14,908 nucleotides of DNA from Octopus sinensis (lineage: Eukaryota). Where the stretch lies: positions 1 through 14,908 of the forward strand of contig NW_021825660.1 in the NCBI RefSeq assembly GCF_006345805.1. Reading direction: 5' to 3'. Of this stretch, positions 1-14,908 are shown one piece after another (the first letter of the stretch is position 1; each line of letters starts with the position of its first letter). Under the pieces are notes generated by a model. It saw only the letters and a program-made list of their open reading frames with translations. It did not search any database and had not been told where the DNA came from. Both the position numbers and the translations under genes were made by a program.

Positions 1-793
1 CAGAATGTGACCATATGAGGGTACTTGAGATTATGTAATAAATTACCTAATATATTGGGTAACATATTATGAAATTTGGGGAATTCCCTAGATTTGAGGA
101 TATGTGAGTATTTGAGATTATTTAATAAATTACGTAATATATTAGGTAACATATTATTCAATTTGAGAGGTCCCTAAATTTGAGGATATGCAATTTGAAG
201 AGGTCCCTAGATGTGACGATATGGGGTACTTGAGATTATTTAATAAATTACCTAATATATTGGGTAACATATTATGAAATTTGGGGAATTCCCTAGATTT
301 GAGGATATGTGAGTATTTGAGATTATTTAATAAATTACGTAATATATTAGGTAACATATTATTCAATTTGGGAGGTCCCTAAATGAGGATATGCAATTTG
401 AGGAGGTCCCTAGATGGTGACAAAATGGGGGGTACTTGAGATTATTTAATAAATTACCTAATATATTGCGTAACATATTATGAAATTTGTAGAGGTCTTT
501 AGATTTGAGGAATGGGGGTACTTGAGATTATTTAATAAATTTATTCATTTCAATTTGGGGAGATCCATAAATTTGAGGATATGGGGGTACTTGAGATTTT
601 GTAATAAATTACGTAATATATTATGTAACATTATTCAATTTGAGAGGTTTTTGTATTGTGCATATTTGGGTATTTAAGATTATGTAATAAATTATGTAAT
701 ATATTGCGTGAGTATTATGCAATTTAGAAGGTCCTTAGATATGAGGATATGGGGTACTGAGATTATGTAATAAATTCACGTAATATATTGTAA
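1..793. repeat. AT-rich tandem satellite, ~87-bp unit built from an ~54-bp A module and an ~33-bp B module
   Basis: Motif GTAYTTGAGATT (with variants) recurs at 21, 108, 226, 313, 432, 518, 587, 670 and 754, giving spacings of 87, 118, 87, 119, 86, 69, 83 and 84 bp. B module (caatttg.gaggtccctagatttgaggatatg) is doubled in the 118/119-bp units. The array runs off the left edge of the window. Confidence 0.95.
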
Positions 794-3700
794 GTATACT
801 TTATTAAAAGAAACAAAATTTAACTTAAGCTAGACTATTTAATTTAGATTCTCAGTCCCGATTATTGGAATCTCTTCTCTCCTTTTAGGAGAAGAGCTTG
901 CAACCAGTTCCTCCTCACTCTCCATCTCCCAGTCAGATAGATTTTCTATTTGTCTCATATCTTTCACCGGCGTGTCACGGCAGCATGCCACTTCTGCAAG
1001 CTGGTAAGCAGCAGAGGCGTATTCTTCGGCAGATACTCTCACTCCATGTCTGTGTTCAACTACCATGCTTTCTAGAGTCCTTTTTAAAACAACAGATTGA
1101 ATATAAGTTCTTGTGGCTTTTTCGATCGATAATTTGTCCATATAGTTTTTGAAATATCTCGAAACAACACCGTCCCAGGTCAAGACAACCGGGATAATCT
1201 TTACCTTTGCATCATAAAGTATCGAAAGTTCGTTTGCGAGCAGATCATATTTATGAAATTTCTCGATTTCGACTTGTTTGAGGCGATCTTGTGACGTGAT
1301 GCCAACTTCAATTAAGGTTATCTCTTGTTTGGTTTGTCATACACGAAGATATCTGGTTTGTTGGATTGAACTTTAGTTTCCGTCATGATTGACATATCGA
1401 CTCTGATTTCAACATTCTGCGTCGATAATATGGACTGAACAGAATGAGTCTTTAATTTGCTTCCTCTCTTAATACCGTAGGTTCGACACAAATGAAGGTG
1501 AATGCACTTCACAACTTCATTGTGTCTCCGCAGATAATCACTGTTTAACATCTTCCCACACTGCGTAGCCAAATGATCAACTGTTTTCTTGCATTTTTTG
1601 CAGTGACTGCATAAAGATCCCATGGATGTGAAGAACAAATTCCTATCCTGCAAGAGACAGTACAATGCTTCACTCCGTGGACCATTATTTCCTTTAGATA
1701 ACCACTCTGAGGATGTGGCTAGATCAACATTTTGTTCGTCCATGCATTTGAATAGAACCGAATGTAGCATTTTACAATTGATGTTTTTAAGCAAATATTT
1801 TCTTTGAGCATCTTTGATAAACTCAACACCCAAATTCTCCATGTCGAGAATTGCATACTTGGAGGCGAGAAATCCTGCAATGTGGCCATATGCCATTTAT
1901 TGTTTGTATCACACGCAGGATTCCCGATCTCCGTAAGCATACTGTCGACTGTCTTTCTAAACTTTTCATGAACTGGAAAAGTATCAGTTCACTTCTGAAA
2001 GAGACTGAAGCAAGTCCTCTCCCAAGAGATTTCCGATTTAATATAACCTCTCTTTATTTGCAGGTTTGAGATGGAGTCTGAGAGTCGTAAGAAGTTGTCG
2101 TATTGACGGTCAATACAATCAAATTCATGAGGTTCAATATTAATGAGTCCGATGTAATAATTATATAGAGAAATGGCATTTCATTTATAGCGTGGAATAA
2201 ATTTACCGCATTTAATTTCGTCTTTGAAAGCATGGTTATCCTTTCCTTTACATTTCCAAGGATAGAATCCATTACTTTACTCTTAAGAACATTACTTCCT
2301 GCATCTTCAAGTACACCCAAGTAGCGATATCCTTTGACTCCTTCCAAAATCTCACAACAAGATAAAGATTTGACATTTGATGCTGACTTTTCTGATTTCA
2401 TCTCCAAGCCAACAGTTTAAAGAATCCATCAACAGCTTCCATCATTTTAATTACTACATCTTCTTTAAGAGCGAATATCTTTAGGTCGTCAATGAAGAAC
2501 AAATGATTAGTAGAATAGGTCAACATATTTGGGTCCTGTTGATTAATCTGAACCTTTGGAAACATGGCATTAAGAATCCTGCTTAGTGGGTCCATCACCA
2601 TAACAAACAGTTGCGGAGATAACGAGTCTCCTTGTAAAATCCCTCGGCTCAACTTTACAGAGCCAATTCTCCTTCCGTCAACATGGAGCTTTACAGTCCA
2701 CATTTGTACAGTCCTTTTCACAAAGTTAACAATCCATAAAGGTATCCCAGAGCACTCCAACACATGAAATAGAAAGTCGTGGTCAACAGAATCGAAAGCC
2801 TTCTTGACATCAATCCATGCAGAGTATAGCCCATTTCCATACTCTTTATTTAGGCATTGGTTAATAAGGGCCTGTTCTTTAGCACCCTGACACTGTCTCC
2901 TCGTACCAAGTTGATTGTCGGAAATTAAGCCAAATACATCCATGAACTCAGACAGTTTTCCATTAACACACTTGGTAACTAACTTATAAAGTGTCGACAT
3001 GCATGTTATAGGCCGTAAATCTTTCGGGGTCTCACAATCGTTCTTTTTAGGAATTAGATATGTAATTCCAGTATAAAACCAGTTTTCTGCATGTAATCAC
3101 CGTTGATTATTTTCTTGATTTCAACACATAAAAATTCATGCAGAGATTCTAGTCTTTTAATGAAGAAATTATATATTCCGTCACATCCCGGTGCCTTCCA
3201 GTCAGGAAGATACTTAATGATCTCCATTATGTAATTATTTGTTAAATCTGGCAACATGTCTTCACTGCCGGTTATTCTTTTACTAACATTGTCCAGTGGC
3301 ACGGATATTTCGCGCCTTTTGCTCCATACTTTTTCCCAGAACGACATGCACTCCTCATCGTCAAAAGAGTATGTTGTGACTTCATTACTCTTTGATAAGT
3401 TTCTGTAAAATCTTCTTCTGTTTAGTTCGAAGCAAACATTGTCCTTACGAAAGTCCTTCCTCCAGTTATATACAGCAATTTGTTTTTTCTTAACTCTGAT
3501 TAGGTCATGTAGTAAGGATTCGATTCTCGAAAGCTCTCCTTTTTTTTTCCTTTTATATCCATAACGACATAGAATATCCATCACATTTTGTTTTTCACAC
3601 TGTGGCAGAGCCTGTCTTACGTAACAATTTACAAGTTCTAGTTCTGCGGATAATTTTGAAATCTTCGCCTCGGTATTTCCCAGCCATGTAGTCTGTGGCT

Positions 3701-4415
3701 TAACTTTCTTAGTTAAGACTGAGTAGGCACACTGGGCAGCATATAAAATATCACAAATTGCATTGATATCTCGAGGTGGATCGTCCTTTGTAATATGATA
3801 TATTGCAGAGTTTAATCCCATTAAAATATCAGCTTTGACATATTTTCTTGGAATTTTCCATGTAGGCTTACGAGCCTCTCTCGGTATCGATTTAACTTCC
3901 TTAATTTGGAAGTTAATCTCTTCCAGGCAATTTCTGAAATTGGAGATTTCCACTTGTTCCCTTGTTGGGAATTGTTTGCTATTAGATCCACCAGCTTCAT
4001 TATTGTTACCAACTACTGGTTTGAGTTTGGCCATATTTTTCAATCTGGTTAGACTCGTACTCTCAGAAAATTTCACGTTGAACTTTTCAAAGATAAAACT
4101 CCAGCCACCTCTGGGTATTCTCCCCAGTCTTTGTCTGGTGGCATGAACAGCCTGTGACACCCATTCATTCTTAGAGACACAATTGACATCCTCAATAATG
4201 GCAGAAAGAGTGTGAAAGTTAGTATTGGCAACATGACTTCCAAACGTAGGGTTATTGTTTATACAAGCTCTTGTGGCATTATCCAGCCCCAGAGACATCG
4301 TTCCTGCATCCACCATATCTTTTTTATAATTTACTTCTGCAGGAGGGCCCATGGGATTCATTTTCTTCTTATCGAGAAAAACGGACATGAACAGCACCAC
4401 AACAACAACAATTTT
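794..4415 (-). mobile_element. R4/Dong-type non-LTR retrotransposon (single ORF: RT + CCHC + restriction-like endonuclease), ~3.6 kb, inserted in the satellite
   Basis: The same satellite flanks both sides. Imperfect TSD: taatatattgtaa (781-793) vs taatatttgtaa (4416-4427). AATAAA on the minus strand at 800-805 after a short 3' UTR. Domain motifs are listed under the ORF. Exact ends are approximate. Confidence 0.88.
839..4361 (-). pseudogene. Frameshifted RT-RLE polyprotein of the R4-type element
   Basis: Stitching ORFs 3054-4439, 2398-3000, 2054-2407, 1318-1896 and 839-1183 gives: WKAPGCDGI; LRPITCMSTLYK; WIDVKKAFDSVDH; GILQGDSLSPQLF; HLFFIDDLKIF (RT YxDD equivalent); GYRYLGV; CxxCx6Hx4C (CKKCKKTVDHLATQC); RHN; PDIFVYDK..ITLIEVG (PD-(D/E)xK-type RLE). 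Likely start is MNPMG at 4361. About seven apparent 1-bp deletions (~3089, 2420, 2180, 2103, 1900, 1880, 1335). Confidence 0.92.
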
Positions 4416-4665
4416 TAATATTTGTAATATATTATACAATTTGAGGAGGTTCCTAGATGTGAGGATATGGGAATACTTGAGATTTTATAATAAATTACGA
4501 ATATATTGCGTAAAATATTATGAAATTTGTAGAGGTCTTTAGATTTGAGGAATGGGTACTTGAGATTATTTAATAAAATATGTAATATATTGAGTAACAT
4601 ATTATGAAATTTGGGGAATTCCCTAGATTTGAGGATATGTGAGTATTTGAGATTATTTAATAAAT
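4416..4665. repeat. Continuation of the ~87-bp satellite (about 3 units)
   Basis: Same modules as 1-793. For example, 4601-4665 matches 66-130 (tatgaaatttggggaattccctagatttgaggatatgtgagtatttgagattatttaataaat). It ends abruptly at 4665. Confidence 0.95.
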
Positions 4666-4868
4666 CCTCTGTCTTAGCCAAGAAGATTCGCTTGCATCCA
4701 TGTTTCTCCGAGCGATAAGGAGGCAGACGTGTTTTAAGAAGAACTTGGATGTTTGCGGGACAAAGGCTGCGGAGATCTCGAATGCCAAAGGGACAATTAC
4801 TAGTTGCATTTGGATTGTTGAAATAGTTATTTAAAGAACAAATAAATAAAACAATTATTTTTAAAGTG

Positions 4869-5234
4869 TTATTTTGTATTCGTGTACTTAGTAACTGCCT
4901 TTGCACCCTCTGTAATAGCATGTTTTGCCAATTCACCGGGAAGAAGAATCAGACGAACTGCAGTCTGTATTTCACGTGAGGTAATGGTAGCCTTCGAATT
5001 CTGATAGACTAGATTTGATGCCTCGGTTTTTATTTTGTCATAAACATCAAATGTGAAACTGTCCATAGCCATCATAGCCTTCTTTGACATCCCAAGTTGA
5101 TTATGTACTGTCTTTAAAATTTTCATAAATATATGGAAAAAGTTTTCCTTTTCTTTTTTTTCTTGTAGCAACAGAAACATTTTTGCTTTTTATAGGAGCT
5201 CTTTTTGTCCCTTTGTGCTAACTTTAGGTGCCAT
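4869..5234 (-). CDS. H2B: Histone H2B, divergent (copy 1; three 1-bp deletions and one 3-bp insertion relative to the reconstructed frame)
   Basis: MAPK start at 5234. Core motifs [59 protein letters not shown]. Stop at 4869-4871. The copy at 10110-10474 supplies the missing bases. Confidence 0.93.
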
Positions 5235-5247
5235 TATCCACAAAATT

Positions 5248-5299
5248 TGCTATTACAGAGGGTGCAAAGGCAGTTACTAAGTACACGAATACAAAATAA
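5248..5299 (+). pseudogene. H2B: H2B 3' fragment (last ~16 codons, [16 protein letters not shown])
   Basis: Exact reverse complement of 4869-4920. It begins at the fold-back junction and has no start codon. Confidence 0.9.
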
Positions 5300-5359
5300 C
5301 ACTTTAAAAATAATTGTTTTATTTATTTGTTCTTTAAATAACTATTTCAACAATCCAAA

Positions 5360-5571
5360 TGCAACTAGTAATTGTCCCTTTGGCATTCGAGATCTCCGCA
5401 GCCTTTGTCCCGCAAACATCCAAGTTCTTAAAACACGTCTGCCTCCTTATCGCTCGGAGAAACATGGATGCAAGCGAATCTTCTTGGCTAAGACAGAGGA
5501 TCTCTGGTACAATCATGCGCGGCAACACCAAGCTATTCTTTTGACCGGGATCTGATCGTTCTCTGTTTTTT
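5360..5571. other. Element X: unidentified GC-richer segment between H2B and H3
   Basis: 58/120 G+C at 5401-5520 vs 6/60 at 5641-5700. Near-identical copies at 9841-10060 and, partially, at 4664-4810. T6 run at 5566-5571. No RNA or protein family recognised. Confidence 0.55.
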
Positions 5572-5716
5572 CTTTAATTAGTTCACTAGTAATTTAGTCT
5601 GTAATCTCGAAAAATTCATCAATTTAAGCAATAGTTACAATTATTTGATGGTGCTGATAAAATATTATTTTAAAAATATTTAATTTTTTAATTTTAAAAA
5701 TGATGAGTGATTTAAC

Positions 5717-5790
5717 CAAAAAATTTTCGGAATGATACTTTTTTGCATCACTCGAAAAAATTCGGAATAATGTTGTTTAACTATATAAAA
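5717..5790 (+). promoter_or_regulatory. H3 promoter: TTTCGGAATGATACTTTTTTGCAT motif block plus TATA box
   Basis: TATATAAAA at 5782-5790, 46 bp upstream of the ATG. TTCGGAAT at 5726-5733 and 5761-5768. The same motif block occurs in the H2A/H4 intergenic region. Confidence 0.6.
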
Positions 5791-5835
5791 CAAAAATAAC
5801 TAGCCTGAAACTGTTCTGTCTGAAATAAAAAAAAT

Positions 5836-6249
5836 ATGGCTAGAACTAAACAAACTGCTCGAAAATCTACTGGAGCAAAAGTTCCAAGGAAACAATTGTC
5901 TGCAAAATCTGCTCGCAAGTCTGTTTCACAATTTGGAGGGGTAAAGAAACCTCATCGATTTCGACCTGGAGTTGTTGCAATGCGAGAAATTAGACGATAT
6001 CAAAAGAGCACTGATTTGTTACTACGAAAACTTCCATTCCAGAGACTCGTGAGAGAAACCGCTCAGTTTATCAAAACTGATTTGCGTTTTCAATCGTCAG
6101 CGATTGTCGCTCTCCAAGAAGCGGCAGAGAGTTACCTAGTTGGAATTTTTGAAGATAGTAATTTGTGCGCAATTCACGGAAAAAAGAGTAACTATAATGC
6201 CAAACGATATGCATTTATCGAGAAGAATTCGAGGTGAAAAAAAACATAA
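5836..6249 (+). CDS. H3: Histone H3, divergent (copy 1; extra A in the run at ~6180-6185 and two extra A near the end)
   Basis: [80 protein letters not shown]. With copy 2 the C-terminus corrects to [22 protein letters not shown] (135 aa after Met). Confidence 0.96.
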
Positions 6250-6476
6250 TTTGTATTTTAAATAAAAAATGATTTATTGTTTGGATAATTCTGAGACAAT
6301 TTTTAAATTTTTTGTTGAAGTTTGTAGAGAAAATGTAATGTTGCACCTCGTTTAGATAAAAAGAGGATACTAGTTGTGTATTTTAGAAAATATATAATAA
6401 AAATGTTTAATACGGTTGTTGGATAATTAATATATAGCAGGAAAACAAACAAAAACCTATAACCATGAACAAGCTA

Positions 6477-7940
6477 TAGTGAACAAAAATAAAAACTGAA
6501 CATGCTTTTTCTTATAAATTTACAATTGGACAATATTGCAAATATGTCTCAAATTTATTTTTAACATAGATTAAAGTATTTCACATTTTTTTAGTTTTTT
6601 AATAAATATATATTTATGCCTTTTTTATGATATCGAAAATTTAAAACCAAAAAAATACTGAACAAATTTAAATTACTTATATATATCAAAAAAAGGTTTT
6701 ATTTTTTAAAATTCGTTCAAATTCAATCATTTGTAACCTCTCTACGTAGCCAATCATTGAACATTTGAAGAAAAAGGCAGAATAATTGGCATGTATAAAT
6801 CTGGAAAAACATACAGAGAAATACAAGATATCACGAAAAAGTATGCTTGGCACGATATTGCAAATTATCAAAAGCTATTCAAATAAGTGCTTGACGGACA
6901 AAAAAGTTGGGTCTGGTTGACCATTCGTTGCTCAATCGTCAAAAATATTTTAAATTAAAGAGGCTTGAAAAGTGGATGTCAATTTCAACTGTTTTTAATT
7001 TACTAAAACATTTACAGAAAAAAGGGAAATCAGTAACAGCTCAAACAATAAGAAATACCACGAAAAAATTGGTCTGAATGCATATCCGCCACGAAAGACC
7101 ATTCTTACAAAAACCCTAAACTTCAATGATTAAAGCTATGCCAACATGCAATATGCTCTCAAAATATTTCGGGAGCGAGTTATTTTAAGTGATGAAAGTA
7201 AATTAATATGTAAAATAGTGATGTACGAACTTTAGTATGGAGAAATCGCAAGGAAAAATATTTAACAAACAATCTTACAAAACAGTAAAATTCGGTAAAG
7301 GAACTATCATGAACTATCATGCCATAATCAATATTGGATTCATTAATTTGGTTTTGATAAAAGAAGATTGGTGGAGCTTTGTATGTTAACATATTAACGA
7401 ATAATATGATCTCATTTCTGAACAAAATCGAACATAAAGATCCTAGTTCCAACAAGACAATGATCTGAAACATACTTCGACAATAGCAAAGAGCTTTTTC
7501 AAGTAAATAATATCGAATTACTACTATGGCCAACACAAAGCCCAGATTTAAACCCTATAGAGAATGTTTGGGCCTTTATTAAAGAAAAAATCAAAGGAAG
7601 AGAATTTTTGAAAAGGAACATTTATTGCAAAAATATCATCCATTTGGAATTAACTCAAAATAGAATACGCAAAAAGTCTTATTAATAGCATGCCAGGCCG
7701 AATACTAGATGTAATTAGAGCTAATGGAGGACATAATAGATATTAAATAAATTTGTTCATTTTTTGGGTTCTGAATTATGAATGAATGGAAAACCGTATA
7801 AATATAATATTTTTTAGACAAACTAAAAAATAAAGCAAAACTTTATTTAATTTTATAAATCAATAGATGTTATTTTTTAAATATTGTTTCATAGTAAATT
7901 CATGAGAAAATGCTTTTTCAGTTTTTATTTTTGTTCACTG
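6477..7940 (+). mobile_element. Tc1-family DNA transposon, 1464 bp, degenerate
   Basis: TIRs 6477-6500 (tagtgaacaaaaataaaaactgaa) and 7917-7940 match 23/24 and continue imperfectly inward. TA TSDs at 6475-6476 and 7941-7942. Internal transposase remnants. Confidence 0.92.
6761..7746 (+). pseudogene. Tc1 DD34E transposase remnant
   Basis: HTH-like EEKGRIIGMYKSGKTYREIQ at ~6767-6826. VILSDESK at ~7180-7203. FQQDNDLKHT (D at 7456). WPTQSPDLNPIENVW (E at 7560), 34 residues from D to E after correcting one base. C-terminus DVIRANGGHNRY*. Many frameshifts and stops; the start was not located. Confidence 0.88.
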
Positions 7941-8189
7941 TATATATTTACTATTTTTTGGGATAATTTAGCCTAAGTAAATAAATTATATTGGACTAAA
8001 AAAATATTTCGCCAATGATAAAATAACACAGTATTGCGATATTTTATCTATAATTACTTCTAAATGTTTATTCGTTAATTGTGTTTGAAATTTTTTTGAA
8101 ATTCGTTAAAAAAACTTAACTGGTTGATCTATTGTTTCGAAAACAATATTACAAAATAACAGTGCATTATTCAAATAATTAATTTAAAG

Positions 8190-8548
8190 TTAGGAAGTTG
8201 GTTTAGGAGTTTCTGCAGTTTTGCGAATCATAAATCCACCAGATGAAATAATAGCTTTCTGAGTTAATTCTTTTAATTCGTCGTCATTTCCAATTGCCAA
8301 CGACAATGTGACGTGGTTTAATTCTTCTTTTTCCACATTTTACTGCTGTATTTCCAGCAAGTTCAAGCATTTCAGCCACAGCATATTCAATACTGCGCAC
8401 ATATATACGGCGGCAGGAATTCCTACTCGCATTCGGGTTTCATGACGGAGACACCGGTGAATGCGTCCAACTGGAAACTGTAACCGGCCCGAACGGATTT
8501 GCTTTTAGCCTTTGACCGTACTTTTCCTCCTTTTCCTCTTGAAGACAT
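8190..8548 (-). CDS. H2A: Histone H2A, divergent and short (~119 aa; two 1-bp deletions and one 1-bp insertion). Not visible in the supplied ORF track
   Basis: Manual translation: MSSRGKGGKVRSKAKSKSVRAG(L)QFPVGRIHRCLRHETRMRVGIPAAVYMCAV(L)EYAVAEMLELAGNTAVKCGKRRIKPRHI.LAIGNDDELKELTQKAIISSGGFMIRKTAETPKPTS*. Indels at ~8482, ~8389 and ~8302. Confidence 0.92.
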
Positions 8549-8713
8549 TATACTCTGCTAACTATTTTATTTACATAATAAAAAAAATGGCATTCCGAAA
8601 TTTAGTTGAAAATTTTTTTCGGAATGGTCCTTTTTTGCATAGTCGAAAAATTTGGCAATGCTACTTTTTTTGCATAGGTTGAAAATAGTGTTTATTTAGA
8701 GAGAATTTTCCTA
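8549..8713. promoter_or_regulatory. Bidirectional H2A/H4 promoter region (165 bp)
   Basis: Divergent ATGs at 8548 and 8714. Perfect 10-bp inverted pair cattccgaaa (8591-8600) / tttcggaatg (8617-8626). Two tandem CTTTTTTGCATAG blocks ending at 8642 and 8677. Confidence 0.7.
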
Positions 8714-9020
8714 ATGTCTGGACGTGGTAAAGGTGGCAAAGGAGGAAAGAGTGGTGCAAAACGATTTCGAAAGATATTAATTGACAATATACAAGGAATA
8801 CTAAGCCAGCAATAAGAAGACTATGTCGAAGGGGGTGTTCGAAGAATTTCTGGAAAAATTTACGAGGAGACACGTTCTGTCCTTAAGATTTTTATTGAGC
8901 AAACTGTTCGTGATTGTATTTCTTATACTGAACATGCCAAAAGAAAAAACTGTTATCGCAATGGACGTTGTTAATGCCTTGAAACGTCAAGGTAGGACAA
9001 TTTACGGATTTGGTGGATAA
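8714..9020 (+). CDS. H4: Histone H4, divergent (102 aa reconstructed; indels at ~8800, ~8830 and ~8945)
   Basis: [102 protein letters not shown]. The 5' half is confirmed by the intact-frame copy at 14608-14765. Confidence 0.95.
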
Positions 9021-9097
9021 ATTATACATAATTTTTTTAATAAAATACATTGATATTCCTTACAAATTAACCAGATAAAAATTAGCAATTTCATAAA

Positions 9098-9146
9098 GGT
9101 ACTTTTGTCGATCTAAAAAAACTGCGACCACTTCGACAAAAGTACC
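9098..9146. repeat. Perfect 14-bp inverted repeat (GGTACTTTTGTCGA) with a 21-nt spacer
   Basis: 9098-9111 ggtacttttgtcga and 9133-9146 tcgacaaaagtacc, between the convergent 3' ends of H4 and H3. Confidence 0.95.
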
Positions 9147-9170
9147 ATCATTTTTTATTTAAAATACAAA

Positions 9171-9578
9171 TTATGTTTTTTCACCTCGAATCTTCTCGAT
9201 AAATGCATATCGTTTGGCATTATAGTTACTCTTTTTCCGTGAATTGCGCACAAATTACTATCTTCAAAAATTCCAACTAGGTAACTCTCTGCCGCTTCTT
9301 GGAGAGCGACAATCGCTGACGATTGAAAACGCAAATCAGTTTTGATAACTGAGCGGTTTCTCTCACGAGTCTCTGGAATGGAAGTTTTCGTAGTAACAAA
9401 TCAGTGCTCTTTTGATATCGTCTAATTTCTCGCATTGCAACAACTCCAGGTCGAAATCGATGAGGTTTCTTTACCCCTCCAAATTGTGAAACAGACTTGC
9501 GAGCAGATTTTGCAGACAATTGTTTCTTGGAACTTTTGCTCCAGTAGATTTTCGAGCAGTTTGTTTAGTTCTAGCCAT
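9171..9578 (-). CDS. H3: Histone H3, divergent (copy 2; three 1-bp deletions)
   Basis: Reverse complement of 5836-6249. 408 bp vs the 411 expected; missing bases at ~9529, ~9349 and ~9190. Confidence 0.94.
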
Positions 9579-9621
9579 ATTTTTTTTATTTCAGACAGCA
9601 GTTTCAGGCTAGTTATTTTTG

Positions 9622-9695
9622 TTTTATATAGTTAAACAACATTATTCCGAATTTTTTCGAGTGATGCAAAAAAGTATCATTCCGAAAATTTTTTG
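9622..9695 (-). promoter_or_regulatory. H3 promoter copy 2 (TATA box and TTCGGAAT/TTTTGCAT block)
   Basis: Reverse complement of 5717-5790. Confidence 0.6.
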
Positions 9696-9840
9696 GTTAA
9701 ATCACTCATCATTTTTAAAATTAAAAAATTAAATATTTTTAAAATAATATTTTATCAGCACCATCAAATAATTGTAACTATTGCTTAAATTGATGAATTT
9801 TTCGAGATTACAGACTAAATTACTAGTGAACTAATTAAAG

Positions 9841-10060
9841 AAAAAACAGAGAACGATCAGATCCCGGTCAAAAGAATAGCTTGGTGTTCCGCGCATGATG
9901 TACCAGAGATCCTCTGTCTTAGCCAAGAAGATTCGCTTGCATCCATGTTTCTCCGAGCGATAAGGAGGCAGACGTGTTTTAAGAACTTGGATGTTTGCGG
10001 GACAAAGGCTGCGGAGATCTCGAATGCCAAAGGGACAATTACTAGTTGCATTTGGATTGT
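9841..10060. other. Element X, copy 2
   Basis: Reverse complement of ~5350-5571; differs by two 1-bp indels near 9887-9900. Confidence 0.55.
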
Positions 10061-10109
10061 TGAAATAGTTTTTAAAGAACAAATAAATAAAACCATTATT
10101 TTTAAAGTG

Positions 10110-10474
10110 TTATTTTGTATTCGTGTACTTAGTAACTGCCTTTGCACCCTCTGTAATAGCATGTTTTGCCAATTCACCGGGAAGAATCAGACGAACTGCA
10201 GTCTGTATTTCACGTGAGGTAAGGTAGCCTTCGAATTCTGATAGACTAGATTTGATGCCTCGGTTTTTATTTTGTCATAAACATCAAATGTGAAACTGTC
10301 CATAGCCATCATAGCCTTCTTTGACATCCCAAGTTGATTATGTACTGTCTTTAAAATTTTCATAAGATATATGGAAAAAGTTTTCCTTTTCTTTTTTTTC
10401 TTTGTAGCAACAGAAACATTTTTGCTTTTTATAGGAGCTCTTTTTTGTCCCTTTGTGCTAACTTTAGGTGCCAT
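10110..10474 (-). CDS. H2B: Histone H2B, divergent (copy 2; one 1-bp deletion at ~10222)
   Basis: [84 protein letters not shown]|[37 protein letters not shown] (121 aa reconstructed). Confidence 0.94.
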
Positions 10475-10621
10475 TATCCACAAAATTTGCAAGTTCTGGA
10501 GGAGGAAAAATTTATTAGTTAAGGGAGGCAGTTAAAAACTAACTAAGTAGACCTTCGGCATCGCTGCCTTTTCAGTCTCCATCACACACACGCCTCCCTA
10601 CACACAACCACAAGTTAAGAC

Positions 10622-13230
10622 TTACCGCCTTACCTGCCATCCAGAAATAATCTTCTCTAGGACCTCAGAGAGGCCTTTGAGGGATGATTCCTGGGCGTCG
10701 GAGAGCTCAGTCCGGAATCCTAAGCCATAGGCTAGCCTTATGGCTCGTCTTCTAACTTTTTTAAGCACGTCAACATGCTTATGCCTTATCCCTGTCCTCA
10801 TAGAGGTACCAAGCGTGGACGCCATAGGTCAAGACGGGTAACACCATGGCGTTAAACACGCGGAACCAGGCACCTCTGCTCAAGCGGAAAGCACGCAACG
10901 CACCTAATCGCTGCATTGCACGCATTTTCGTACGTGCAATGTGATCATCAAACTTACCGGACGGCTTAAAGAGCACGCCCAATAAGTCATCCGATCAACT
11001 GCAGCGATTGCTGACCCGCTCAGCAATAACCTAGGAACAAATTAGTGTAACCCCTCGTCCTTTTACAGACTTTAAGGACACTGCACTTGTCCGCGCACAT
11101 TCTCAGACCCCTACTCCCACACCAGTTTGCAAGTCCATCCACAGCAACCTGAAGCCTACGACACGCACACTCCGGTTTCATTGAGTGATCCAGAGGATAA
11201 GTCGTCTGCATAGATTACCATTTCAGTACGAGCATTGACTGGCATAGGCGCAGTGGCCATAAACACATTGAATAGTGTCGGACTGAGCACAGAGCCCTGA
11301 GGGACCCCGCGAAGGACTGTTGCGACTTTAGAAAAGACCCCCTGATGCCGCACGACCTGTCTGCGAGATTCAAGAAACCCCGACAGCCAGCGCCTTAGAC
11401 ACGGAGAAACCCCGCACGTGGCAAGGGAACTCCGGAGGCCGTCGTGCCACACCGAGTCGAAGGCCTTTTCAATGTCGAGACTAACTAAAATACCGCATTC
11501 CCTTTTCTGGAGGGCGCTCTTCATACTAGACGACACCTTGTGAAGGCAGTCCCCGCATGAGCGGCCCTCCCTGAAGCCCCATTGGAACTCAGGGAGGGCG
11601 TCTGCCACCATCAGCCCCTCCAGGAGCCTTTGGTGCATAATTCTTTCTAGGATTTTAGATATCGCGGGGAGCAAGGAAATGGGCCTATATCCCCCGGGGA
11701 CATCATGTGGCTTCCCGGGTTTTCCGATAAGGATCACCTCAGCTACTTTCCACCTGGAAGGAATCATCCCAAGTCGCAAGCTCCCGTTAAATAAAACCTT
11801 TAGCGCAGTGATTAACCGCGGCGGGGCCTTCTTAAAGATGGCCATCGGGATCCGATCCAAGCCCGCCGCGGTGTTCTTACTTCGGGAGATTGCTGCCAGA
11901 TCTCCGCTTCAGTAATTTCGCCTGCATCGTCCATTGATATATCCAGCTGGCAGCGCTTGTCCCACGACAATATCTGCTGGACAGTATCAAAGGACGATGT
12001 CTCTACGAACTGACTTCCGTCAGTTCCCGAGATGTCATTGAGATGGGCTGAAAGTATTTCAACCACCTCAACCGGGTCCGAAGCGAGGGTTCCATCAGAG
12101 CGTTTAAGGCGCACTGACTTAGCCCCCCTTCTCCCCGACAGGCTCTTCAACTGCTTCCAGAAGTCCGGAAAGCGAGGGTCCACCCTTCGGCAGGCCCTCT
12201 CCCCCGCGAACTTTCGAGTTCGCGGATTTCTCTTCGGATCTCCCTCTGAAGCCGGCTAATCCAGCCACGAAACCAACACGGTTCTCCTCGTAAATGCATT
12301 TGTCCCGTAGTCTGGATAGCCGGCGCTTGAACCTAATTTTATTTAAGATCCGGTGAGGGAGCGTGGAATGTGACTGACCCTGCACTGAGTTCTGTTTGAA
12401 ATTATCTCGCATGTAATCAGTCAGGGCAGCATTGATTCCATTATCAAGCGCCTCCAACTCACGTATGTTGGCGCAGGTTTCCCCACCAGAAGTGAGGGCA
12501 ACCTGCTGGCCATGAAACTCTCCAGGTTAGCCCAGGAACCCACCCGGAGGTCAAAGTATCCTGGGACCCTTTGAGGAACTGGCTCACGGAGTTCGTGCAA
12601 TAGAGGCAGATGGTCGCTCCCAATATCGGGCAATAAAATAGTTTTACTAACCCAATTTAGAAGACCGGGACTGACCAGAGCAAGCCCTAGCCAGTCACGT
12701 CCTCCCCTCGTGTCGACGTGGTTTGGCTCGCTCGAGGTCCGGATTTCCAGCCCGAGTTCTTCAATCAGCGTCTTCAGAGCCAAACCATGCGAGTTGGTTA
12801 CCCTGAAGCCAAGATCTTGATGCTTGGCATTCAGGTCCCCAACAACCATGGCCTTCGGATGCTTTTCAAAGAACTCCCGTACTGCCAGGAGCACGCCGTA
12901 AAGTTCTTCGAGTACATCCCTCCTAGGTAAAATGTAAGCTCACCTATGCGAATTCTCACTTGGAGGAATTCACATAGGCTACATAAACATAAACCTGAAC
13001 TTTGTAGGGGAAGGTACGGCTTGTAGAAGAGGCTAGTTCCCGTGCCACATATTGACCCTTCTTCCAGGGTATGTGACGACAGTTGTAGCCATCAACTACG
13101 TACGGACCCCCCCTTATCTTCGTTTCGTTGACCACCAGAATGTCCGCACTCGTGGTGGCCAACATCCTCTGAACGGCGTCCCTTTCCCTTCCAGGGAACG
13201 CGCGTTCACCGATATGATGTTGAGCATCAT
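10622..13230 (-). pseudogene. LINE ORF2: APE endonuclease + reverse transcriptase, multiply frameshifted
   Basis: MMLNIISVNARSL (start 13230); DILVVNETK; VVGDLNAKH; DIGSDHLP; YRPISLLPAISKILER; LDIEKAFDSVWHDGL; GVPQGSVLSP; YADD; LPVLTYG. Stop at 10622-10624. No RNase H or C-terminal CCHC seen. Confidence 0.92.
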
Positions 13231-14607
13231 ATCGGTTCTTCGCCAAGGATCTTCTTGGCCTCGGCAACGTTGCAGTGTAGCATTTCATCTACACTGCAAT
13301 TCATCTCCCTACAAAATTTTAATAGGGAAACGCATAATTGCACCGCAGGACTAATACTGTCCTGCGGTACACGCTCGCCAGGGGCTGAGTGCAATGGCAT
13401 CTCCACGTATGGAGGACGCCTTTTCAGCCCCAGGTTGTGCCGGACGGTGCCCGCCGTTTAGCCGCCTCGGAAGGCATTGCCGCCTTAGGCAACCAAGCGG
13501 ACTCGGAAGCTTTCGCCTGCTTTGCCAACTTTGTCGGCGAAGGCTGCACCGACCCACACGCAGCATGGCTCACAGGTTCCACTGGCTTCGCCACCCTAGC
13601 GGGTTTGGGAGGTTTGGCCAGTATCGCCTGCTTGTCAGGTTTTGGGGCAGGGGGCGCGACGCGAGGCGGGCGCCTTACCTTTGGGATTACATCCCCACCT
13701 ACCTTTCGGGTTGCCTCCTTAAACTTGGGGCAGCCTCTGAAGTTGGCAGTGTGTCCTAACTTACCGCAGTTGACACACTGCCTCTCCTTGGATGGTGAGG
13801 GGCACGTCTTGCGACCATGCTCTCCACCGCAGATAAGGCACTTAGCCTTATCCGTGCACTTCGTAGAGATGTGCCCGAACCCCTGACACCGAAAGCATTG
13901 GGTTGCTTTCGGGCGGGGCCAGGCAGCTCGGATCCTAATGTAGCCGATCCTGGTACCAAGAAGTACCAGGCGCTCGGCCTCTGCAGGAGATCCCAGTGTT
14001 AGCTCCGCCACTTCAAGAGGGCGATTACCCTGCTTGAAGCGTGCAATGGCAGAGGCACTGGGGTACTCCTGCAGCAGGTGATCTAGGAGGTCATTATCCT
14101 CGAAGTCCCGAGGAACCCCGAGGAGGAGGACACTTACCTTTCTTACCTTACGTTCGATCCTGACTAGGCGATGCATGCCAGGACCGAACGGATTTGACTT
14201 CTCCAACTCCCCTTTGAAGTTGGAGAAGTCCTCCTTCTCCCATCCAAGCAGAATTGGGTGGGTTCCCTCTTCAGGACTCTATACAGCTTTGAGGCTGGAT
14301 AGAGTCCAGACACCTAAAATTTTTATGACCGAGGCCTTCCCACTAATAGGGAGGACCTCAAGTCGTGCCACAGCACCAAAGGTAATTCTACACCCCCGGC
14401 GCCAGTGGTCTTCTTGGGTGTGCATCCACCTGGGCGGACACACACCCAGTACCTAAAACATTAGGGGGGGTTGGACGGCCGGCAACACGTTTGGGTTTCC
14501 CCACCGTGTGCCAACCGTCCTCGGGTGAAACCTTATTTCCTGCCGAGGAAGAAGAGTCTCCAGTGAGTGCTGAACCCACGTGGGAGGGTCCAGGCTTCTT
14601 CTTCCTT
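13227..14607 (-). pseudogene. LINE ORF1 (Gag-like nucleic-acid chaperone), N-terminally truncated and disrupted
   Basis: QCFRCQGFGHISTKC, CLICGGEHGRKTC, CVNCGKLGHTANFRGCP (three-knuckle ORF1). [12 protein letters not shown] near the N-terminus. Ends ..EAKKILGEEPI* with TGA at 13227-13229. Frameshift ~14450, in-frame TAG ~14280, frameshift(s) ~13425. Confidence 0.88.
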
Positions 14608-14765
14608 TCCTCGTAAATTTTTCCAGAAATTCTTCGAACACCCCCTCTTCGACATAGTCTTCTTATTGCTGGCTTAGTAATTCCTTGTATATTGTCAATT
14701 AATATCTTTCGAAATCGTTTTGCACCACTCTTTCCTCCTTTGCCACCTTTACCACGTCCAGACAT
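14608..14765 (-). pseudogene. H4: Histone H4 5' half (codons 1-53), truncated by and fused in frame to the LINE
   Basis: Identical in translation to H4 up to ..ISGKIYEE. Identity with the 8714-9020 copy ends at aaatttacgagga (14608), then continues as [10 protein letters not shown].. (ORF 14388-14765). Confidence 0.93.
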
Positions 14766-14908
14766 TAGGAAAAATTCTCTAAATAAACACTATTTTCAAC
14801 CTATGCAAAAAAAGTATCATTGCCAAATTTTTTCGACTAATGCAAAAAAGGACCATTCCGAAAAAATTTTCAACTAAATTTCGGAATGCCATTTTTTTTA
14901 TTATGTAA
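14766..14908. promoter_or_regulatory. H2A/H4 bidirectional promoter, copy 2 (inverted; H2A predicted beyond the window edge)
   Basis: Reverse complement of ~8571-8713 with small indels and one substitution (gcaatgctac vs gcaatgatac). Confidence 0.75.

Follow-up and report, generated by a model that had tools for sequence, protein, structure and literature searches.

In a 14,908-nt stretch of the Octopus sinensis genome (contig NW_021825660.1, positions 1–14,908; hereafter, the window), the first part of a histone H4 gene is fused in frame to ORF1 of a long interspersed nuclear element (LINE), creating a chimeric open reading frame (ORF). This H4::ORF1 fusion is a genuine insertion junction. 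It belongs to a LINE lineage with a strong but not absolute preference for sites just 5′ of the start codons in a histone array. Among 14 LINE 3′ ends on five O. sinensis contigs, 10 lay upstream of a histone ATG at a distance of at most 140 nt and 4 had other flanks; all 10 array-flanked ends had the same orientation as the downstream histone gene. We favor, at a probability of roughly 0.7, an explanation in which a LINE with an apurinic/apyrimidinic endonuclease (APE) would insert by target-primed reverse transcription from a nick in the interval that separates the TATA-like box of a histone gene from its ATG, with the truncated 5′ end joined upstream and the intervening DNA lost.

The fusion ORF occupies 14388..14765 on the minus strand, begins with an ATG, and in the ORF list encodes 125 residues, running from an H4-like N-terminus to ...ISGKIYEE and then into LINE-derived residues. 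Read along the minus strand, the order of elements is the H2A/H4 promoter, H4 codons 1–53, the LINE (14607–10498), 23 nt of native H2B upstream sequence, H2B, and H3. We defined the junction by alignment to a full H4-like copy at 8714–9020 on the plus strand of the window; identity extended from the window end at 14908 through the promoter, and H4 homology ended sharply at 14608. The divergent H4-like gene (14608..14765, minus strand) thus comprises codons 1–52 and two bases of codon 53, and LINE ORF1 sequence takes over in frame 3′ of 14608. The LINE-derived part of the fusion ORF (14388..14607, minus strand) contains ~64 codons in the authentic N-terminal frame of ORF1, as determined by comparison with LINE copies at two related loci (copy c1 of L001 and a copy in L004), followed by a 1-nt deletion at ~14416, eight shifted codons, and a TAG at 14388–14390. 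An 'AGGA' repeat and 0–1 nt of filler mark the junction, which would read ATTTACGAGGAAAGGAAGAAGAAGCC in a chimeric transcript.

The LINE in the window is truncated at its 5′ end. Two fuller relatives (L001 c1 and the L004 copy beginning at 15335) reach ~115 nt further 5′ and carry a candidate ATG (...ACGATGAACTGCCGG, MNCRSRG...) that is absent from the window copy, in which the PSQMGSAL sequence of the relatives is PSHVGSAL. As a consequence, no in-frame ATG precedes the Met of GPGMHRLV at ~14177. A 188-nt N-terminal segment of both fuller relatives is missing from the window copy. A reading of this DNA from its letters and ORF list alone (the sequence-only reading) had proposed a 125-residue in-frame fusion of H4 to Gag, joined at H4 codon 53 in the ORF1 frame, and a 5′-truncated LINE lacking its own ATG, and the ORF list, the H4 alignment ending at 14608, and the comparisons with fuller relatives bear out each of these claims.

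Both sides of the insertion matched a native histone unit. The truncated H4 was 98.9% identical to 12616–12790 of O. sinensis contig L002, its residues are those of the O. sinensis protein 'histone H4-like' (P0034 / XP_029654015), and a composite of window codons 1–53 and the C-terminus of the other H4 copy was 100% identical to XP_029654015. The alignment placed 143 of ~155 bp of the shared divergent H2A/H4 intergenic promoter 5′ of the truncated H4 (14766..14908, minus strand); this part matched the corresponding stretch 5′ of the full H4 (8571–8713) at 84–100% identity, and the promoter together with the H4 5′ part was 94.7% identical to the native L002 intergenic region and H4 5′ part. H2A lies divergently upstream of the other H4 copy at 8548–8229, and the H2A partner of the truncated H4 would fall past the window end. 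Downstream of the LINE, collinearity with L002 and tblastn identified 23 nt of native H2B upstream sequence and an H2B-like gene with its ATG at 10474–10472, continuing into H3 (10113..10497, minus strand). Window 9147–10511 was collinear with native L002 5978–4641 (95.6% identity over 1.37 kb), and because this native context continues past H2B and H3, we ruled out that the genes 3′ of the LINE are retrocopies. The H4 and H2B ATGs of L002 are at 12633 and 13868, with a ~1.05-kb spacer between the genes. The window lacks ~1053 bp, running from H4 +160 to a point 24 nt before the H2B ATG; this segment corresponds to the H4 3′ half and the spacer, and the L002 gene order upholds the earlier proposal that the insertion replaced exactly these parts of the unit.

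The window belongs to a tandem array of Octopus core histone genes that are divergent and lack 3′ stem-loops; within it, the histone set lies at 4869–9020 and 9188–10474. In L002, the native unit (<-H2A H4-> H2B-> H3->) has a period of ~5.1 kb and contains intact genes for H2A (119 residues), H4 (102 residues), H2B (121 residues), and H3 (136 residues), with identities to the canonical proteins of 57%, 81%, 54%, and 78%, respectively. Replication-dependent histones have the near-invariant canonical H4 and H3 sequences, from which the array proteins depart. No histone 3′ stem-loop (Rfam RF00032) was found at E≤1 in the window or L001 or at E≤5 in L002, and an AATAAA follows the H4 stop codon. 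By these features, the array genes are not ordinary S-phase histone genes, and the histone-type, S-phase expression previously suggested for the fusion is unfounded. The array set may consist of replication-independent variant histones, possibly of the germline or embryo. Several O. sinensis units carry it in intact and identical form. A related quartet is present in L005, L009, and L010 with 72–93% amino-acid but only 71–78% nucleotide identity, and H3 and H4 are 92–93% identical in amino-acid sequence between lineages at ~76% nucleotide identity. This combination indicates that the proteins are under purifying selection. The window's other H4 copy adjoins an inversion. We also considered that the cluster might be a decayed pseudogene array in which the H4/H2B orientation is non-native, but the intact identical genes and native H4->H2B order of L002 rule this out.

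The position of the LINE 3′ end is the feature that recurs. We reached L001 via the LINE protein, L002–L004 and L008 via H4, and L006 and L007 via other members of the ORF1 cluster. Upstream of H2B, 3′ ends lay 23 nt from the ATG in the window (subfamily A) and 16 nt from it in L001 (a different LINE, LINE-2). Upstream of the H3 ATG, the distances were 17 nt in L002 (LINE-2), 19 nt in L004 (subfamily A), 82 nt in L001 c2 (subfamily B), and 135 nt in L004 (an A/B deletion derivative). Upstream of the H4 ATG, they were 18–20 nt in L001 c3 (subfamily B), 17 nt in L002 (a short element with a B-like tail), 9 nt in L004 (subfamily A), and 140 nt in L003 (the same deletion derivative found 135 nt upstream of H3 in L004). 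Seven of the 10 array-flanked ends were thus 9–23 nt upstream of an ATG, and three genes and no fewer than three element lineages are represented among the 10. For random insertion into a 5.1-kb four-gene unit, the probability of seven or more of 10 ends falling within 25 nt of an ATG in the gene's own orientation is ~1e-12, or 1.4e-7 if only 4 of 6 are taken to be independent. The upstream sequences of H2B, H3, and H4 are unrelated to one another, and the H2B and H3 junctions fall 16–23 nt after TATA-like motifs. In L004, a 5′-truncated copy (17557–18563) has both flanks inside the H3 promoter.

Targeting of the histone array is therefore a strong preference and is non-exclusive. The earlier suggestion of a recurrently histone-targeting LINE holds insofar as relatives recur in the array with strongly non-random junctions, but relatives were also found at L006, L007, and L008 and, for one copy, L003. 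Recurrence had been expected at H4 codons 48–53; what recurs instead is a 3′ end 9–23 nt upstream of the downstream histone ATG, with the 5′ end in the upstream gene. The proposed comparison of flanks gave histone ATGs downstream of 10 of the 14 sampled 3′ ends and other flanks for 4, and the window junction itself appeared only once.

Several observations weigh against our interpretation. L006 and L007 contain no histone gene within 10 kb: the former carries a subfamily-B copy that has a 5′ end and an ATG of its own (MVVFPVMRKND...) and is nested in another element near a ferlin gene, and the latter carries a LINE fragment without histones. L008 carries a 279-nt subfamily-A 3′ fragment in non-histone DNA, and one copy in L003 has a non-histone 3′ flank. 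All loci but three were reached via H4, which means that the sample favors histone contexts. No target-site duplication was found at any copy. The exact junction of the window was seen once, and its 21-mer is absent from L001–L004. The window contains inverted joins that could be assembly artefacts, and the placement of junctions near the transcription start site depends on our reading of TATA-like motifs.

A single in-frame joining has a chance probability of 1/3, as the sequence-only reading had noted, and it is recurrence at related loci that exceeds chance. L001 c1 is joined to H3 codons 1–28, and the resulting ORF (8041..8421, minus strand) reads ...SAKSARK|LSALRRLCRSGGV...; the L004 copy is joined to H2B codons 1–25, and its ORF (15231..15626) reads ...NVSVATK|RQLSALRRLCRSGGV.... 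Together with the window, three of three coding 5′ junctions (H4 codon 53, H3 codon 28, and H2B codon 25) are thus in the ORF1 frame (P = 0.037; 0.11 for the two further junctions alone), a statistic that is suggestive only. Two other 5′ ends lie elsewhere: that of L001 c2 is 63 nt upstream of a would-be H2A ATG, in the H2A orientation, and that of L001 c3 is 367 bp after H3 codon 34. We ruled out c2 and c3 as full-length copies that mark the true 5′ end, as L006 reaches further and has its own ATG.

The 5′ termini of the two fullest subfamily-A copies (L001 c1 and L004 15335-) are within 6 nt of each other. Both copies open with a 38-nt piece that is identical at 30–31 of 38 positions to H4 codons 32–43, is in both the H4 and ORF1 frames, and reads SALRRLCRSGGV in place of these H4 codons; the chance probability of this match is ~5e-6. 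This piece is the relic of an earlier H4 fusion, which retrotransposition has passed on. The common 5′ terminus inside it suggests that the present master elements start transcription there and not at the H4 promoter. This result argues against expression of the LINE from the H4 promoter, as had been envisaged, and for a transcription start belonging to the element.

Substitution patterns bear on the INDEPENDENCE of copies. Between the window copy and L001 c1, we counted 62 differences at third codon positions compared to 30 at first and 20 at second positions; codons with a single change included 50 synonymous and 39 nonsynonymous cases, and divergence was threefold higher in ORF1 than in ORF2. 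No frameshift is common to the two copies. The third-position bias and the lack of common frameshifts indicate separate insertions from selected masters rather than duplication of one dead copy, and much of the divergence built up under selection in active lineages. Both copies are tied to the same site upstream of H2B, with LINE-2 sitting between the c1 tail and this site in L001. We considered that the two might be orthologues distinguished by a 1.08-kb deletion, but the codon-position bias, the absence of common frameshifts, and the uneven divergence of the flanks (98.4% vs 91% identity) argue against this possibility. The internally deleted derivative is present at two sites (L003 1–616 and L004 15376–17460), which indicates real transposition within the array. 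It consists of subfamily-A nt 1–1680 joined to the subfamily-B 3′ end (nt 3627–4029) and looks like a non-autonomous element mobilized in trans.

In the favored explanation, the LINE would have inserted in the same orientation as the histone genes, presumably by the usual target-primed reverse transcription, with its 3′ tail joined to the DNA on the ATG side of the TATA-like box, ~23 nt before the H2B start codon. An incomplete cDNA, ~115 nt short, would then have been joined at its 5′ end inside H4, after codon 52/53, and ~1.05 kb of target (the H4 3′ half and spacer) would have been lost at integration or by later deletion. Site choice could depend on promoter-bound factors that act as a tether, on the DNA being open where transcription starts, or on the likeness of the LINE tail to upstream sequences.

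The junction places ORF1 behind a histone promoter and ATG, and expression from it would be possible; the copy is broken as written. Read from the histone ATG, the frame does not stay open through the functional domains of ORF1: it is lost at ~14416, a stop follows at 14388, and four more indels precede the RRM. The RefSeq models P0039 and P0145 represent only read-through from the LINE 3′ end into H4. Two lesions had been proposed to separate the fusion ORF from the remainder of ORF1. We found more, with five indels relative to the closest copy (14416, 14393, 14310, 14293, and 14252) parting it from the RRM and zinc-knuckle region, and the TAG at ~14280, taken as one of the two lesions, is a consequence of frameshifts and not a point mutation. 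As written, the ORF cannot give the H4-tailed ORF1 protein that had been imagined, with RRM and knuckles, and it is probably not functional, although some of its frame-breaking indels may be assembly errors.

How else might these junctions have arisen? Functional capture of promoters and start codons would make the array LINE dependent on histone promoters and ATGs, with production of a histone-tail::ORF1 protein and in-frame junctions that are selected or reproduced. The three in-frame coding junctions fit this idea, as do the 5′ ends of c2 and c3, which also lie downstream of a histone promoter in that gene's orientation, and the in-frame H4-derived piece, which implies that an older H4 fusion was carried by retrotransposition. 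The dispersed sister subfamily, by contrast, has an unrelated 5′ end and its own ATG (L006), and the conservation and intactness of the histone quartet elsewhere mean that its promoters are probably active. However, a statistic on three junctions has too small a sample, and the fullest copies start at one point within the H4 piece rather than at the H4 mRNA start, which points to an internal start site; a candidate ATG of the element's own follows. Moreover, the upstream H2B start codons in L004 and L001 are mutated (ATA and TTG), and the window copy loses its frame after 64 codons. We regard capture as doubtful. In its most elaborate form, a LINE of a possibly maternally expressed histone array would insert between TATA and ATG, place its 5′ end in frame with the preceding histone tail, borrow promoter and ATG, and yield histone-tail ORF1 proteins, with the H4-derived codons as a fossil of this habit; we think it unlikely that all of this is correct.

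Another possibility is chance insertion followed by array turnover. Here, unequal crossing-over, deletion, and inversion would have rearranged and multiplied an untargeted LINE, and the fusion and hot spot would be by-products. The window and L001 are indeed heavily rearranged, with inverted duplications and gene fragments, target-site duplications are absent, copies exist outside arrays, and in-frame joining has a 1/3 chance. Amplification of one event, however, cannot explain why lineages A, B, LINE-2, and the short tail-sharing element end at the same relative position at three genes with unrelated upstream sequences; the probabilities of ~1e-12 to 1e-7 and the third-position bias, which implies separate retrotransposition events, further make turnover improbable. 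A switch of reverse transcriptase between LINE RNA and abundant histone mRNA could in principle generate both ends, with the 3′ junction at the cap site, the 5′ junction at an internal switch into the mRNA of the upstream gene, and the cDNA resolved by array homology. The H2B and H3 junctions follow TATA-like motifs by 16–23 nt, a spacing at which a cap site is conceivable, 5′ junctions are in coding sequence of the upstream gene in its own orientation, intervening DNA is lost, and target-site duplications are missing. But genes 3′ of the tails run into native spacer past any mRNA end (in the window, L001 c3, and L004 H3 and H4), and each event would thus need homologous resolution on both sides; the junctions vary (9, 16, 17, 19, and 23 nt upstream of the ATG, with some at 82–140 nt), and untemplated cap-derived bases were not consistently seen. 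Such template switching therefore seems quite improbable to us. Finally, the H4 and LINE copies might have been joined falsely during assembly of a repeat-rich region, given that the junction was seen once, that the window contains fold-back-like inverted joins, and that it is overly rich in 1-nt deletions of the type common among long-read consensus errors. False joins normally occur inside shared repeats rather than where two unrelated ones meet, the succession H4 -> LINE -> H2B -> H3 is exactly that of the native unit, and the same kind of junction occurs in an independent assembly, making an artefact very improbable.

By every feature tested, the element is a LINE: it has a reverse transcriptase, an APE endonuclease, an ORF1 with CCHC motifs, variable 5′ truncation, and a common 3′ tail, and it has no long terminal repeats. 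The whole subfamily-A copy, identified by blastn and GC profile, spans 4110 bp (10498..14607, minus strand), with 95% identity to L001 3950–7986 and 8171–8235 and 96–98% identity to copies in L003 and L004. GC content is 49–59% in the element block (10501–14500) and 24–40% in the surroundings. The ORF1 core (13424..14206, minus strand), defined by translation and Pfam, contains an RRM-like region and three CCHC zinc knuckles of the form CX2CX4HX4C; Pfam zf-CCHC was below cutoff in the window (E 0.0014) and above it in an intact relative (1.6e-5). A protein search with ORF1 returned a single close relative, an O. sinensis protein. Pfam assigned the N-terminal part of ORF2 (12421..13288, minus strand) to an APE-type endonuclease (Exo_endo_phos_2, 1.1e-10; Exo_endo_phos, 1.7e-5) and the following region (10622..12183, minus strand) to the reverse transcriptase and C-terminal part, with RVT_1 at 8.8e-33 on 11156..11860 and at 1.2e-35 in the intact relative. 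A relative at L001 15331..17943 has an intact 870-residue ORF2 that matches the human L1 ORF2p and R2 reverse-transcriptase structures. Alignment of four 3′ ends defined a 3′ untranslated region (10498..10621, minus strand) with the tail ...CTTAACTAATAAATTTTTCC(TCC)n, the last 12 nt of which resemble the native H2B upstream sequence ATTTTTCACTCC; this likeness leaves the 3′ junction ambiguous over 10498–10511 (~12 nt).

The window copy is extensively damaged, with at least 18 further frame-breaking indels beyond the first frame break. Relative to its relatives, ORF1 has frame-breaking indels at 14416 (-1), 14393 (+2), 14310, 14293, and 14252 (-1 each), and 13459 and 13452 (+1 each), the last two being private insertions that put the C-terminal ~80 residues out of frame. 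ORF2 has eleven private 1-nt deletions (13187, 13061, 12883, 12479, 12276, 12204, 11900, 11201, 11190, 11042, and 10983) and a 7-nt insertion at 10789; the first three deletions split the endonuclease across two ORFs, and the last five, with the insertion, break the reverse-transcriptase region. The number of deletions is high compared to a rough estimate of ~1% neutral-like divergence from codon-position counts, and many of the indels may be long-read consensus errors. Only 5 of 13 checked deletions fall in runs of three or more bases. The excess of single-base deletions (13 private to the LINE, mostly outside homopolymers) and frameshifts in the window H3 (6182) and full H4 copy (8760–8840) that are not present in intact O. 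sinensis units suggest residual consensus errors of this kind in the source assembly.

Searches for further relatives of the window were largely negative. Exact look-ups of the fusion ORF, H3, and the reverse transcriptase of a second element in the window gave no match, an ORF2 search found only relatives of 29% identity or less and no extra copies, and a metagenome scan with ORF2 found no relative. An Rfam scan gave two sub-threshold matches only, HepC_CRE and MIR9481, which we took as chance; the former, at 14193–14262 (plus strand) inside the ORF1 region, scored 25.9 bits against a gathering score of 140 (E 0.006).

Other features of the array deserve mention. Array pieces in the window alternate in orientation (4664–5250, minus; 5241–9103, plus; 9147–10511, minus), with a head-to-head join at ~5241–5250, 7–17 nt upstream of an H2B ATG, and a tail-to-tail join at 9103–9147, reflecting a true palindromic rearrangement or else an artefact of fold-back during assembly. 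H4 copies at L008 9882–10312 and L003 614–1067 match the array from ~105–145 nt upstream of the ATG to ~3–6 nt past the stop; one is on a 224-kb contig away from any array, and both look like dispersed 'orphon' H4 genes with a common 3′ break. The related quartets are compact (<-H2A H2B-> H4-> H3->, within ~2.1 kb). L005 is a 2.2-kb scaffold (DF945167) of the assembly of the ant Vollenhovia emeryi, and L009 and L010 are Logan ERR12370323 and ERR12408770; these quartets reflect a wider host range or contaminants from other cephalopods.

L004 also contains an intronless innexin ORF (14121–15260; Pfam Innexin, 5.9e-64) that lacks the first ~45 profile positions. Its end is separated by 55 nt from an H2B fragment, and the break falls 17 nt 5′ of the H2B start, again at the hot spot; LINE machinery may have placed this ORF as a retrocopy. 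In the same locus, 9279–10657 and 14121–15203 correspond to the RefSeq proteins XP_029656692 (175 residues) and XP_029656690 (509 residues, 'innexin unc-9-like'). Both models splice the last 72 LINE ORF2 codons onto H4, and the longer one runs on into the innexin ORF; we regard them as chimeras of annotation, which nonetheless hint that transcription reads through from the LINE into H4. The window contains another reverse-transcriptase element, which is AT-rich, at 839–4439 (minus strand; RVT_1, 4.7e-21), inside a ~205-bp satellite (flanks at 1–720 and 4438–4714). By eye, its C-terminus contains CX2CX5HX4C and RHN...KPD, like LINEs with a restriction-like endonuclease (R2/Dong type), but no match of this presumed endonuclease to R2 was found in the PDB. 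Pieces related to this element adjoin the same satellite in L004 (1688–5110 and 8377–8577).

Known LINE targets are ribosomal RNA, small nuclear RNA (snRNA), spliced-leader, and tRNA genes and telomeric and simple repeats. If true, a bias toward the starts of histone genes transcribed by RNA polymerase II (Pol II) would be a new kind of safe haven for LINEs and a further case of position-specific integration beside Ty3 and TRE5-A. The published target list and our full-text literature searches contained no histone-targeting LINE, which is absence of evidence only. The in-frame histone::ORF1 junctions and H4-derived 5′ end also pose the question of whether a promoter-less LINE lives off host promoters and start codons. 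The host array is itself noteworthy as a complete, conserved, stem-loop-less quartet in which H4 is only 81% identical to its canonical counterpart. Sea-urchin cleavage-stage histones are a replication-independent, polyadenylated set, to which the octopus genes are alike in forming a complete, divergent, clustered quartet under purifying selection, without 3′ stem-loops and with AATAAA after the stop; as a difference, no H1 was seen in the octopus array.

Human L1 makes 5′-truncated insertions with target-site deletions, microhomology-mediated 5′ joining, and 5′ transduction. The octopus LINE shares 5′ truncation, the lack of target-site duplication, target loss, and 0–1 nt of filler with the AGGA repeat, and the host piece (H4 codons 32–43) at the 5′ end of its daughter copies resembles an L1 5′ transduction. 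In contrast to L1, octopus deletions repeatedly span the interval from the N-terminal coding part of one histone to the upstream region of the next gene, and the carried host piece is coding and in frame. Target-specific non-LTR elements include R1/R2 (28S rDNA), Utopia/Keno (U2 snRNA), NeSL/CRE/SLACS (spliced-leader genes), and TRAS/SART (telomeric repeats). Like elements of the R1/R2 type, the octopus LINE occupies a tandem, multicopy host gene family in the gene's own orientation at all 10 array-flanked 3′ ends, several lineages share this niche, its tail resembles the target (ATTTTTCCTCC vs ATTTTTCACTCC for H2B and AATTTTTCCTA for H4), and nested insertion at the same point is seen (LINE-2 behind c1 in L001). 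R1/R2-type elements have essentially all copies at one target sequence, whereas octopus junctions fall not at one nucleotide but 9–140 nt from the ATG in unrelated sequences upstream of three genes, with copies elsewhere too; octopus insertions also delete 20 bp to ~1 kb of target, and they target an array of protein-coding histone genes transcribed by Pol II. Position-specific integration next to the transcription starts of RNA polymerase III (Pol III) genes is known from yeast Ty3 and Dictyostelium TRE5-A. As with these elements, the position of the octopus LINE appears to be set relative to the gene start and not by a common sequence, and its orientation is consistent; Ty3 and TRE5-A depend on Pol III factors and tRNA genes, whereas the octopus genes are Pol II histone genes. 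On this comparison, the octopus LINE would be closer in behavior to Ty3 and TRE5-A than to R1/R2-type elements, but at Pol II histone genes.

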